Below, piece by piece: positions 160 through 63,296 of a stretch of DNA of 64,000 nucleotides. The translations under genes were made by a program, and so were the position numbers. The stretch comes from Bugula neritina. Taxonomy: Eukaryota > Animalia > Bryozoa. Numbering within the stretch: the first letter of the stretch is position 1; each line of letters starts with the position of its first letter. The notes below the pieces were generated by a model. That model was not told the origin of the DNA. It worked only from the letters and a program-made list of their open reading frames with translations, and did no database searches. Location: positions 9,701,751 through 9,765,750 of the forward strand of contig OZ037773.1 of assembly GCA_964035545.1 (NCBI GenBank). The letters run 5' to 3'.

Positions 160-3100
160 CATCTTCCACATTGAGTGTAACCTGCAGGGTGGTTGTACAT
201 GGTGCGATGAACCCCACTAGCAGTTAGTCTGAGTCCAGTGTCTGCATATTCCTTCACATAAGTTATGGTGAACAGATCTTCCACATCACCATCTTTATTA
301 CTTGCCCAATAATGGAATCTCTCCAGATTACCACTGTGACTTCTGAACATCTTCTGGTTATGGGATATCACTAAAAAATGAGCATCAATATCAAATTTCA
401 AAGTCCAAATAGTTATTTTATGTCTTAATCAGTGTTTGCAAATATAAATAAAAATGTTAGTAGAAAATAGAGCATATGCAATATTTAAACCTGTTTTAAT
501 AAAGCTACCAACAACTAATACTAAAGTTTCTGCTTTGCAAATTTACAAAATAGCACCGCTTAAATGATTTTATTTAAATTTGAATTCTTACTATTCAGAT
601 TTTTTTTAATTGAAATATTATATTTATGTAAAGATTTATTAGTTGTTAAATAAAAGTTCTGAGTCACCTCCATCAACTGCATGGTCTCTTCTCACTTCTT
701 CAATGTGCAGACGTGAAGGGGAGTTGAATCCACCAGTAACAGTTCTGGTTGGTTGGCTATAACTATCAATACATCTTCCAATGTATATTCCAATGATGTG
801 ATTTCCAGCCAAGAGACTATTGTCACAGATACCTTCCACTAAAAATGAGAATCACATTGTATTAATTACTTGGAAAGCTTTAACAATAGCAAAGTGAATT
901 CTTCTTACAATGCCAATTGCTATTTTATGAAAACAATACAACTGTCTACGCACAAGTTCTGACTCTTTTGTGGTCTCTCCAGTAGGCATAGTTATCAGGT
1001 GAACTCGTGTGTATTACATAATCAAGTTGGGGGGAACATTCACTGTCTCCTATCTTCACAAACCTAAATGTGGAACAAAATTATTAATTATAATTATACT
1101 TATACTACTATAGTTTTATCTAATATTTAAAAGCTTTTAAACCTAAATATTCAAATGTGAATGTTCAGCATTCTTAGTATATAAATAATTATTATTGTGT
1201 GGGATAATAGCATTACTTTTTTAAGAATAAAAACGATGCTAAATAGTTTTAGCAAGTTATTTCTGTTACCTAGACACAACATGTACAACTAACCATCGTG
1301 CGCAATAGTAGAGCCCATTTGTCGTTACAATAACGGAGGACACTGCACTGTATTTAATCCTTAGACTAGTGTCGTCTGCAACTTTGGTATACTCTATTTC
1401 CTACAAATAGTAAGCAAAGAAATAGTATACAATTTTAATAAAGGTAGATATTTGTACAAGCGACACTGCTTCTGAAATGCTATTGCGGTGTATCTTCGTT
1501 AAAATGTCATACAATTTGATAAGAAATAAAATAAGTATTTTGCCATGCAACTGCTTAATATAACAATAAGTGCTGCTAAACTTTAAATTTAAAAAGATTT
1601 CTCTCACTAACCTTGAGAAGTCGGCTTTCTGCATGCAAATCAAAACTCTGATCAACTTCTTCATTCCAAGTTTCATACTTGTAGTTGAACACATTGAGTA
1701 GAGGGCAGGACAAAAGGCTTTCATCTGGAAAAAGGACTGAAAGTTTTTAGGAGTTTAACAAGTTTAGTAATTTCAACCACAATTCTCCTCAGTTTTTAGA
1801 TATTTCCAATTTTGAGGCACTTTATTTAGCAGAAACACAAATTTGTTTCACCATATTCAGTGACAACAATGCAATTTGCATCATATCACAACTTTTATTC
1901 GATTGTCTACTTGAAACAGTAGTTGGGTTTAGGGTTCAAAAGGTCTAACTAATCCAGGACAGACCTGTAACTGTTTTCTGTGGCACCATCTCCATGATCA
2001 GCATAGTTCTGGCAGAGTTCCAACCAGAATGACCATCTGACGTAGTGTAGCCATCACAAGAATCAATCACTAAACGCACGACCCTGTCACCAGCTTCTAT
2101 CCCATAGCAGGTCCCATCAACTAAAAGTTAAAACTCATCATATGCTTTTACTGTATAACTTAACACATATTCAGTTAATTAAGCAGATAATCACTACCTA
2201 AAGCAACCTTACTATTCATAGCCCGATGATTATCCCCAGTAGTGGCACTGTAATCCAACATCTCAATGGTATCTGGATTGGCACATTTGTTACCATCAAA
2301 TGTCAGATACCAGTGGTGACAGTATCCAGCTGCATTATTATGTCCTCTGACAGCCATGTGGATGATGACTCGTAGTCCTGAGTCATCCCGGGACTTAGGG
2401 TATGTGGCTGTCTACAAGCAGTCAAATTCAACACTAGGATAAACAGTATTTTGAGTCTGAAAGGCAACTGCAGTACATTGATGAATGCTATCTTAAGAAA
2501 AAATTGAAGTAACAGTTTGGGCAGTTATAATATTTTATTTACTGCAAAGTAAAAGTTAGCAAAAAGATAACTAATAATAAAAATCTAAAATATGAAAAGT
2601 TTGCATGAGAAAACAGTAATGGAGGATACCATGACAGTCCCACTGTCTTCCTCATCAGGGATGATATCTGACCAGTAGTGTCTGATGTTTGCATATTCAT
2701 TCTCTAGCTCACACTCCTCTCTCTGGTCAGCTGCGCAATGTTATTATAAACACAAGATTAGATTCTTAGTTGATTGTTGGAGTATTTATATGGCTGCGAG
2801 ACGAGTCTCTTGTATTACATAAAACTGTACTATGATTTAATTTGCAATTAAAATAAAATCAATAGCATGATTACCATTTTGCAATATTGTGCAATTTCTT
2901 AGGAAATTGAATGCCTACACATTATACTAATTAGACTCAAGTAAGTTTATGCTACAAAATAGCAATCTTGTATAATCTAAATCATAAATGCATTTTTTAC
3001 TTGCCAACACATATTGCTTTTTCCAAGACAGCTTCTCCACATCCTTTCATGCAGACTTCATGTCCAGAACAAGTTCTACCATTACAGTTTGATACCTTCA

Positions 3101-60500: not shown

Positions 60501-63296
60501 CTCCAAAGTAGAAGAGGTGTCGCCATTCAACTCGAAACACAATCCTAAAACAGCTTTGATAAGTCAGCATTGACACCAAATCAGTAAATATAAAGTTTAA
60601 ATGCATATTATGAATTAAAGTCACCTGAATTGCTACCAAAAGAATATTATATTTTTATTTAGTTATTTATTATATTCAAAAAAAAACTTGACTACAAATA
60701 TGTTTGAGCATTATATTACATATTGTGCTAAGTGAATCCGTTTGACATGACTATCATATTGTCTCAGTGCCAAGATAATACAATTCATAATACAAAAGCA
60801 AGGCAGTTGTTCAACATATCCCAATGTGATTGTCATTGAAAGGTTGGAGTAAAACGTTGGAATAGGTATGTAAATTATCATTACGGTTGTTACAGAATAT
60901 TACTCTTATTGCAATTTCTTTACACTCTAAATGCAACCAACTCAGATATAATGAGATATAGTCATGGGATAAGTATTCTTTTTAGCTGCTTTAAAACTTC
61001 GAATTGTATTCGTTAATCAGCATTTTACCAAAATGCAAAGCTTCTAACATAAAATTCCTCCTTGAAGTTTGTAAAACTAAGTAATATATTGTTGTTTTTT
61101 AATGCCTCTGACGCACTTACAAATAGAAATCAATGTCATGTTGCTCTAATCAAATTAGTTCACACTTGAAGTTTCCTTTTTAGAGCAATGGCTATAATGT
61201 TGATATTTGCTTTTTAAAGCTTACTGCAATCAAATTTAATTTAATTTATTGGTTTTTTCTCATGAAGAGCGCTGCCTTTAGAGTTATCTGCTGACATAGA
61301 TGATAGGAAATTACACAATATCCTGAACTTAACTATGTGGTTATTTAAAAAACACTCTATACAATAATGCTTGTGTTTCAACAAAATAATAATTTTACAA
61401 AAACAATGTTTCAACTTTCATAACTGCAATCCAATTATTTTAGTTAGTTCGTTAAGCATAAGTATTTGTTACGTTTCAAAATTTTCAATCCCACACATTT
61501 TTAGTGTAAATATTCTGCTATGGAATGTTTAATTAGTGCAACTGCTAAAATACAATTTAAAAAGAACCAATGACAGGTATCAAAGTATCAACCCTCTAAA
61601 CTCTTATACACACTTTATACGTACTTCTTTCATATGATTTTAGAATAGGGAAAGTAAGTTGTGTCATAATTACTGAGTCTTTTAGCTGTTTAGCTGTGCT
61701 TATAAAGATTATAGTCTGAAAACATAATAACTATATGTGTGAAGTACTGATGCCGAAATTGAAGGCATCATCATATTATTGTAGCCGACATTACACTATA
61801 TTTTGCCATTAGACAAGTTTTTTTTGGAGTTTCCCCAATGATAAAAAAGTTTAAATTTAGGTAAAATCATATTATACAAAAGGCAAAGCATAATATTTTT
61901 CTCATATAAGATAAACTTACATTTTTTCAAGACTCATCTAATTGCTTTGTATGCAAAATTTTGTACCCTGCATTCCCACTGGGGCCTGCACAGGAAATTA
62001 AAATACTGGTGGCATGTTACAGATGTTGGTTATGATACAATAAATATTTAATTATTGTTTCATAATTTGAAAACATAATTGATTTTTGAGTTACAGTTTG
62101 ATATTGCAACTGCATAATTCACAAAGATTATTAGTTATAAAATAATTGTTAGCCTGAAAACTGAGCTGTTGATAATGATTACTTTAATCGCACCACTTTT
62201 TAAGTTAGTAATTGCTAATGCAAAAAAGACGGGTTTTTGTTTGTTTAAACAAACATATTTGTATTTTAATAAAGACAAATGAAATTAATTGCCATGCATG
62301 GAGTGTAAAATGTTAAAAGTTTTACTACCAGCTATGCTGTGGAAAGCATAACTGTTTACAAATGAATTCAATTTTGCCAACATTGCTTCTAATGTTTTGA
62401 TAAAATACTTGTCTTACCTGCATTACTTCTAAGAACAGCATTGCATTCGAAAGGAAAGTTTCTCCAGCAGTTGACCAGACACTCTGTGAGACTTCTAGTT
62501 GGTGACTTTCTGGTTATAAGAGGATTCTTAGTGTTGAGGTACTTGTCTTTTGATATACTGACTGAGTTCCCACACTCTGGTAAATCTATAACAAACTTTC
62601 TAACATTATACAATATAATGTTTGGTTTACTAAAAACTGCGGCTTTAGTTATATAATGGTTTTTTTTTCAGAACTGGTAGGTTTAAAACATATATATTGT
62701 TATGCCAGTAGTTTGTATATAAAGAAGATAACGCAAGACTTAGTAAAATAATAATATATTCAATTACCACACAATATTAAAACATAAACATGCAGATTTA
62801 TAACAGCAATTGCAACTCTATAAAACAAACAAAAGTTATGCTTAATATGTTAAATATGATGAGGCTTAGTAAATTATTAAATTTTTATTTCAAATACCAG
62901 AAAATAAAGATCAATAAATCTAATTATATAATTTGATTAAAGTTAGACATCTTTTCACAAGAAAACAAACCAAAAACTTTTACAATCAGAAAGTATTGAT
63001 TTCGAAAGTTATATTAAATGAAATATAAGGCACACCTATACCCAGTACACTGGTGTACACTTACCTGGTACACTGGTCTACACTTACCCAGTACACTGGT
63101 TCACACTTACCCAGTACACTAGTCCACAGTTACCCAGTACACTGGTCTACACTTACCCAGTACACTGGTCTACACTTACCCAGTACACTGGTACACACTT
63201 ACCCAGTACACACTTACCCAGTACACACTTACCCAGTACACTGGTCAGAGCTACATGGAGTGATAAGGTGCATAACCAAATAATCAGCAGCGCCAT
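54527..63296 (-). CDS. Paralog D (complete, ~620 aa): secreted PAN/apple-like + Cys-rich + 3x CTHRC1-C-terminal-like domain protein
   Basis: Exons: 63233-63296, 62418-62585, 60441-60544, 59820-59910, 59392-59480, 58960-59158, 58612-58767, 58124-58236, 57350-57456, 56837-56946, 56251-56421, 55138-55342, 54937-55034, 54527-54714. All introns GT-AG; sum 1863 nt in frame. Signal peptide [21 protein letters not shown]. Confidence 0.87.
55362..55822. repeat. (TA)n followed by (TG)n/(TGTC) compound microsatellite
   Basis: Directly visible, in intron 11 of paralog D. Confidence 0.97.
63038..63246. repeat. Minisatellite (23-bp and 15-bp units) composed of the exon-1/intron-1 junction of paralog D
   Basis: Minus-strand unit ACCAGTGTACTGG|GTAAGTGTAG, with donor G at 63232, 63217, 63202, 63179, 63156, 63133, 63110, 63087, 63064 and 63041. 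Confidence 0.92.

Follow-up and report, generated by a model that had tools for sequence, protein, structure and literature searches.

How might proteins that carry three copies of the CTHRC1 C-terminal domain, and no collagen helix, build a binding head? The question is raised by a 64,000-nucleotide stretch of the Bugula neritina genome (contig OZ037773.1, numbered C9 in our genome-wide count, positions 9701751-9765750; hereafter, the window), which encodes a tandem family of such proteins. A sequence-only reading of this DNA had proposed that they are secreted, that a PAN/Apple-like domain is fused to the three repeats, and that the repeats could form a pseudo-trimer within a single chain. 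Taking the results below together, we consider it moderately probable that the window genes encode a functional family of secreted proteins, each with a PAN module, a cysteine-rich module and three CTHRC1_C domains, whose repeats form an intrachain pseudo-trimeric head with an extracellular binding role.

The window contains four paralogous genes, D, C, B and A, all on the minus strand, and splice analysis gives each of them 14 exons with the same intron phases, as the sequence-only reading had anticipated. A six-frame motif scan of the window found all of the motifs listed in that reading, in four minus-strand clusters, and comparison of the minus-strand open stretches all-against-all revealed ~14 conserved segments that occur as the same series in each cluster. 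Splice junctions were chosen by open frame, GT/AG boundaries, phase compatibility and consistency across paralogs. The resulting proteins of 620-630 amino acids contain no internal stops in any of the four genes and are 61-83% identical to one another. The ratio of nonsynonymous to synonymous substitution rates (dN/dS) is 0.18-0.29 for the genes as a whole and stays under 0.6 in each module; it peaks in the N-terminal module (up to 0.55), the fastest-evolving part. Because the frames are intact and sequence identity and dN/dS lie in these ranges, genes A-D are functional and not decaying copies.

The CTHRC1 C-terminal domain is represented by the 137-position Pfam model PF25815 (CTHRC1_C; cut-off 27 bits). 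Exon pieces of all three repeats match this model at the expected profile positions, as a CTHRC1-type identity for the repeats would predict, and three pieces pass the cut-off on their own. Together with the paralog identities and dN/dS values, these matches put the pattern far outside what chance would give. In gene D, for example, repeat 1 matches through exon 6 (32.1 bits, positions 26-80) and exon 7 (33.6 bits, 97-137), repeat 2 through exon 11 (17.7 bits, 97-136), and repeat 3 through exon 12 (21.9 bits, 1-53) and exon 14 (41.4 bits, 97-137). A local hidden Markov model built from the window repeats recovers three domains per protein, with only 1-3 residues separating the aligned cores, and the repeats are 30-40% identical to one another. 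A phase-1 intron immediately ahead of the x-G-x-C motif is common to all three, a phase-0 intron preceding Y-x-K is common to repeats 1 and 2, and a phase-2 intron within C-x-R/W is common to repeats 2 and 3 (here and below, a slash marks the junction); these shared positions support internal duplication of one ancestral unit. The absence of a Gly-X-Y run, also part of the original claim, extends to any run of three or more triplets in the four proteins, and homologs P0002, P0003 and P0020 have no run of four or more and no Collagen Pfam match. Neither the window exon pieces nor these homologs match a C1q or TNF family in Pfam (PF00386, gC1q, included), and a sequence search of the PDB found no relative. 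The window proteins thus have neither the collagen repeat nor the single domain per chain that define CTHRC1 proper, and for this reason should not be filed under that name, though they are members of the CTHRC1_C domain family.

The same architecture exists outside Bryozoa. A profile of the C-terminal half-domain, run against 1.84 billion representative proteins, gave 444 matches, which are mostly single-domain proteins or exon-sized fragments, together with a set matching in several stretches. Multi-domain homologs in this set score 249-260 bits against PF25815 in three stretches. In the brachiopod Lingula anatina, PAN_1 plus three CTHRC1_C domains is found in RefSeq entries named 'uncharacterized protein' (LOC106162620 and LOC106165752; XP_013395411.1, XP_013395410.1 and XP_013399537.1). 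P0020 has the same composition, encoded by one unbroken open reading frame of 1,836 nucleotides on a 2.6-kb transcript-like contig from SRA run SRR32924703. The proteins with PAN plus three CTHRC1_C domains align with the window proteins from end to end at 25-30% identity. The Lingula proteins in particular share the signal-like start, PAN_1, cysteine module and three CTHRC1_C domains in a collinear chain of ~600 amino acids, but they belong to another phylum, are only 25-30% identical and have never been characterised. Among the 1.84 billion representative proteins, no full-length one exceeds 50% identity to the window genes. The closest public matches, at 75-87%, are fragments of exon size and include a cluster with a Bugula neritina protein, and the best longer match (37%) is a Bugula neritina protein labelled 'CTHRC1'.

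At the N-terminus, all four proteins open with Met and a hydrophobic stretch of 10-12 residues ending in ...SVL. The PAN-like assignment made in the sequence-only reading holds as probable: homologs pass the Pfam threshold for the module, whereas the window exon pieces fall below significance. PAN_1 (PF00024) scores 25.8, 22.8 and 21.7 bits in homologs P0002, P0020 and P0003, respectively, against a gathering cut-off of 21.4. Spliced window N-termini align with the corresponding homolog regions with an HHalign probability of 93.5% (E 2e-7) over the PAN core and the six-cysteine module, and the core cysteines (C-x3-C ... C ... C) are invariant across both sets. As a lead only, the ten best named neighbours of window exon 2 by language-model features all belong to the PAN clan (score 0.89). 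Foldseek matches to a model of the homolog N-terminus are likewise all PAN/Apple modules, namely the HGF N domain, the Sarcocystis SML-2 lectin, plasminogen, factor XI/prekallikrein, and Toxoplasma and Eimeria PAN modules; the model itself is of low confidence (predicted local distance difference test score, pLDDT, 55) and the matches have E no better than 0.013. Pfam searches with single exons of the PAN and cysteine modules returned nothing meaningful (a 14.8-bit match to AID, E 0.03, is noise), and the six-cysteine module in exon 4 has no family match. Taken together, these comparisons indicate that the N-terminal module is a probable PAN/Apple domain.

For the three-domain part of the chain, we predicted the structure of P0020 residues 150-611 with AlphaFold2, using a 14-row alignment of multi-domain relatives. 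The model has a mean pLDDT of 82 and a predicted template modelling score (pTM) of 0.89, a value at which the mutual arrangement of the three beta-sandwiches is confidently fixed. Its jelly-roll beta-sandwich domains pack around a threefold axis, and the body of P0020 is predicted to be a C1q-type trimer made from one chain; the pseudo-threefold packing first suggested for the window family is in this way borne out in prediction for a collinear homolog. Structural alignments relate the model, at 7-8% identity, to the heterotrimeric C1q head and to engineered single-chain trimers (5HKJ/5HZF, scC1q; 4DOU, sc-adiponectin; 5KCA, sc-Cbln1; 4ZCH, sc-APRIL-BAFF-BAFF). Those trimers are laboratory constructs, whereas the version in the window family would be natural and bears no gC1q/TNF Pfam signature. 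An Atlas feature search with P0020 gave no usable match, and an Atlas shape search gave single-domain matches only. The terminal strand motifs are spaced 166 and 152 residues apart in the window proteins and 151 and 159 in P0020, a similarity that makes carry-over from the homolog reasonable; with this strong in silico support, the window proteins too are predicted to pack as intrachain pseudo-trimers.

When did three domains come to share a chain? A tree of 73 domains over 145 columns, built by a quick search and hence of limited resolution, places all domains of the PAN plus three CTHRC1_C proteins in one clade (Shimodaira-Hasegawa-like approximate likelihood ratio test, SH-aLRT, 96), apart from collagen-bearing CTHRC1 and from the metagenomic multi-domain proteins. 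Within it, the middle domains of all taxa cluster (SH-aLRT 86), and the window first and third domains each pair with a Bugula domain (99); how the first and third domains of window and brachiopod proteins relate is left unresolved by the tree. This grouping suggests that the triplication arose within the clade and probably predates the split between bryozoans and brachiopods. An earlier MAFFT alignment that mixed full-length homologs with window exon fragments left 39 usable columns and was discarded. A word-indexed search with the clean alignment brought back only P0020 and P0003, and is silent on distribution, the family being too divergent for shared 5-mers. The two domains of P0006, the 321-residue Bugula neritina protein KAF6026444.1 annotated as 'CTHRC1', group with the window first and third domains (SH-aLRT 99 each). 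The public gene model has probably missed the middle domain together with the N-terminal modules, and the label 'CTHRC1' misleads.

The public record also bears on how new this architecture is. Leclere et al. 2020 (PMC7058181) describe Cthrc1 as a collagen repeat followed by one C-terminal domain, model that domain as C1q-like and trimeric, and report collagen-less versions in choanoflagellates, dinoflagellates and bacteria. A table footnote in the same paper mentions collagen-less CTHRC1-domain proteins in Lingula and Phoronis, collectively and without description; the architecture, the PAN fusion and an intrachain trimer are not discussed there. A literature search on the Lingula and Bugula accessions, on CTHRC1 with a PAN domain, and on CTHRC1 in bryozoans, brachiopods or phoronids found nothing relevant beyond that study. 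The suggestion of an architecture not yet described therefore stands in part: we found no named family and no description, but public databases already contain the architecture without a name and the 2020 footnote touches on it, which makes it an undescribed variant, not a categorically new one. Public proteins hold other undescribed CTHRC1_C architectures (P0012, P0005, P0089, P0011/P0155 and P0007). The sponge Oscarella pearsei has a protein with collagen, fn2 and four CTHRC1_C domains; unnamed metagenomic or SRA proteins combine collagen with four of these domains or carry 5, 8 or 9 in tandem; and one public protein of 1400 amino acids reads PAN, CTHRC1_C, LamG, fn2, pentaxin and two further CTHRC1_C domains.

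Several known systems resemble the window family in part. Canonical CTHRC1 shares with it the PF25815 globular domain, modelled as a trimerising C1q-like jelly roll (PMC7058181), and is secreted, as the window proteins probably are, but has a collagen stalk and a single domain, in contrast to the stalkless, three-domain window proteins with their PAN/Apple and six-cysteine modules, separate clade and at least 23 genes. Predicted Symbiodinium proteins have up to three Cthrc1 C-terminal domains (Leclere et al. 2020, PMC7058181, suppl. Fig. S5) and so also carry several CTHRC1_C domains per collagen-free chain; these dinoflagellate sequences, however, group with bacterial and choanoflagellate ones and have no reported PAN module, and their domain multiplication is probably independent. 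In molluscs, collagen-less proteins with three gC1q domains (HcC1qDC5/6 and CfC1qDC-2) act in pattern recognition and bind lipopolysaccharide, peptidoglycan and bacteria (PMC5519582, PMC10672478), and vertebrate CTRP4 has two C1q domains. These are secreted, as the window family probably is; like it, they lack collagen, place C1q-superfamily domains in tandem on one chain and belong to lineage-expanded families; unlike it, they use gC1q (PF00386) and have no PAN module. The likeness to the mollusc proteins is an analogy of mechanism only, the window domains being CTHRC1_C and not gC1q, and PMC5519582 and PMC10672478 contain no discussion of intrachain trimer packing.

We propose the following model. 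Each chain would run from a signal peptide through the PAN/Apple module and the small six-cysteine module into three adjoining CTHRC1_C domains, taken to be C1q/TNF-like jelly rolls, with no collagen stalk. The three domains of one chain would fold back together around a pseudo-threefold axis to give a globular head like that of canonical CTHRC1, C1q or adiponectin, where three collagen-held chains supply it, and internal triplication would in effect replace collagen-driven trimerisation. The three faces, 30-40% identical, could then diverge freely, as in the heterotrimeric C1q head, producing an asymmetric head that, with the faster-evolving PAN module, may constitute an extracellular binding unit. 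Judged by its PAN and C1q-like modules, by the tandem expansion of a family whose N-terminus evolves quickly, and by analogy with the mollusc proteins, the role of this unit is most likely lectin-like or pattern recognition, or else matrix and cell-surface binding. A bolder and rather doubtful extension is that the family is a natural single-chain mimic of the heterotrimeric C1q-type head that was fused to PAN and amplified to at least 20 genes as innate recognition receptors of lophophorates (bryozoans, brachiopods and perhaps phoronids), in parallel with the C1qDC expansion of bivalves.

Several points weigh against the proposal of a secreted, pseudo-trimeric binding family. First, the fold was predicted on a homolog only ~25% identical to the window proteins, and AlphaFold2 was trained after the single-chain trimers 5HKJ and 4DOU had become available, which may have biased it somewhat towards that arrangement. 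Second, the N-terminal evidence is soft at several points: the signal peptide was judged by eye, the intron that splits the PAN module leaves its exon pieces below Pfam significance, and the structural model of the homolog N-terminus is weak, as are its matches. Third, no RNA run contains the locus, which leaves splicing and expression unconfirmed in this species; the sole run that includes it covers 92% of sampled words, introns among them, and is DNA-like, probably the source sample. Finally, vertebrate CTHRC1 acts in Wnt and planar cell polarity (PCP) signalling and in collagen regulation, not in immunity.

These points leave room for other explanations. For example, the three domains could form no intrachain trimer at all, behaving instead as independent beads or pairing across chains in domain-swapped or higher oligomers, with valency as their purpose. 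The public proteins with 2, 4, 5, 8 or 9 tandem CTHRC1_C domains, or collagen plus four, fit such an arrangement, as none of them can be a simple pseudo-trimer; the mollusc papers treat their three gC1q domains as separately active binders; and structural support for the pseudo-trimer is in silico only. Set against the predicted packing of P0020, we nonetheless consider this explanation unlikely. Alternatively, the proteins could have kept the canonical CTHRC1 role, being secreted to modulate Wnt/PCP receptor complexes or the deposition of collagen matrix as the animal develops, buds and regenerates, with no part in recognition or immunity. The CTHRC1_C domain is common to both, and Leclere et al. 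2020 (PMC7058181) observe that a high Cthrc1 copy number tends to go with indirect development and a strong ability to regenerate; a colonial animal that grows by budding would match this trend. By contrast, the clade of PAN plus three CTHRC1_C proteins is separate from collagen-bearing CTHRC1, and at least 23 tandem copies with an N-terminal dN/dS of up to 0.55 would be more usual in recognition or effector repertoires than for a conserved signalling cofactor, making a retained canonical role quite improbable. Least credible, and very improbable indeed, is that the long genes are artefacts in which splice models misjoin adjoining single-domain genes or decaying copies: RNA evidence is absent in this species and two junctions need non-canonical GC donors, but exon order, phases and open frames are identical in four paralogs over 1.86-1.89 kb of coding sequence at dN/dS 0.2-0.3, no start codon or signal peptide precedes domain 2 or 3, the Lingula RefSeq models and the unbroken P0020 frame encode the same single chain, and both GC donors fit the GC-AG consensus and occupy the very positions of GT in the paralogs.

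The four genes, all read on the minus strand, are arranged as follows. Gene D (63296-54527) is complete, with GT-AG junctions and 14 exons encoding 620 amino acids. Exon 1 (63233-63296) supplies the ATG and the hydrophobic, signal-like peptide ending in ...SVL, and closes on a phase-1 donor; exons 2 and 3 (62585-62418 and 60544-60441) encode the PAN/Apple-like module, which a phase-1 intron divides; and exon 4 (59820-59910) encodes the short six-cysteine module. Domain 1 occupies exons 5-7 (58612-59480; Pfam matches in exons 6 and 7), domain 2 exons 8-11 (56251-58236; Pfam match in exon 11), and domain 3, with a two-cysteine tail and the stop codon, exons 12-14 (54527-55342; Pfam matches in exons 12 and 14). 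Gene C (52485-43907; 14 exons, 629 amino acids, complete) has exon 1 at 52485-52407, the PAN module at 52115-50364, the cysteine module at 49920-49830, and CTHRC1_C domains at 49324-48385, 47539-45286 and 44987-43907. Gene B (16448-7178; 14 exons, 630 amino acids, complete) has these parts at 16448-16373, 15754-15026, 14269-14179, 13537-12234, 11666-9190 and 8642-7178, respectively. Gene A (623 amino acids in total) begins at 5385 and runs to ~1.5 kb left of the window, with exons 1-12 inside it (within 1-5385): exon 1 at 5385-5325, PAN at 5038-3700, the cysteine module at 3095-3005, domain 1 at 2730-1965, domain 2 at 1724-668 and, of domain 3, exon 12 at 370-160. Exons 13 and 14 were located in the flanking DNA at window coordinates -388 to -485 and -1283 to -1470. 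The limits of 160 and 63296 given to the family in the sequence-only reading are therefore the end of gene A exon 12 and the gene D start codon.

All introns are GT-AG except two, gene C intron 7 (donor at 48383-48384, after 48385) and gene A intron 4 (3003-3004, after 3005). Their donors, cag/GCAATG in gene C and g/GCAAGT in gene A, each stand at a conserved position where the three remaining paralogs carry GT, and agree with the consensus for GC-AG introns, which is how we read them. The exon-1 donor ctgg/GTAAGTG is repeated ~10 times at the start of gene D intron 1 (63039-63240, minus strand), as 15-nucleotide copies followed by a 23-nucleotide tandem repeat at 63039-63211 (7.5 copies, 90% matches). 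Used as alternative donors, the 15-nucleotide copies would keep the reading frame and each extend the end of the signal peptide by five residues; in genes C and B the motif recurs once or twice in degenerate form. Elsewhere in the introns of genes D and C lie (AT)n and (TG)n microsatellites of 100-127 copies (55357-55823, 46221-46436, 47557-47671 and 48051-48299).

Genes A and C share a 644-nucleotide tract at 92.9% identity (205-844 versus 44822-45462) that spans exon 11, all of intron 11 and exon 12, whereas their other introns do not align; it looks like a gene-conversion tract between paralogs ~44 kb apart. In the pairs D/C, A/C and A/D, repeat 3 shows far less synonymous divergence than repeat 1. 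The gene B protein has nine N-x-S/T sequons, whereas there are none in D, C and the 528 window-encoded residues of A, and gene B also has the most divergent C-terminal tail.

Beyond the window, a six-frame search of the whole 216-Mb assembly detects at least 89 exon pieces that match CTHRC1_C, clustered on contigs C9, C5, C3 and C6, and 23 intact copies of the family's PAN-type exon 2 (13 on C9, eight on C5, and one each on C6 and C3). The family thus comprises at least 23 genes in this genome. Within the C5 cluster, one open stretch of 133 amino acids (C5:8442583-8442918, minus strand) covers CTHRC1_C profile positions 14-137, nearly the whole domain, without the introns of the window genes. 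In the window itself, the 27-kb gap between genes B and C contains no convincing open reading frame and no Rfam family. Non-coding tandem arrays in this gap have 64-nucleotide units (39468-40234, ~12 copies, with related copies nearby at ~40.9-41.6 kb) or 181-nucleotide units (18442-19113, 3.7 copies), and dispersed duplicated non-coding segments (~25.4-26.9 kb and 28.6-29.5 kb versus ~31.2-32.4 kb) may be a repeat element.

CTHRC1 has been studied mostly as a vertebrate factor in fibrosis, cancer and Wnt/PCP signalling. A sequence search finds no PDB structure of its globular domain, and the case for that domain being trimeric and C1q-like comes from modelling; a natural chain predicted to assemble the trimer by itself would lend this model independent support. 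A protein of the window family would also be a monomer without collagen, and so should make a simpler target than CTHRC1 for expression and crystallisation. If the predicted packing holds, evolution would have reached the same single-chain trimer design that protein engineers use for C1q, adiponectin and TNF ligands. More broadly, the window draws the attention of lophophorate biology to a large, tandemly expanding and conversion-prone family, presumably secreted, that is now annotated as 'uncharacterized' or mislabelled 'CTHRC1'. As a candidate repertoire for recognition or matrix binding, it comes from phyla in which the molecules of immunity and of the extracellular matrix have hardly been studied.

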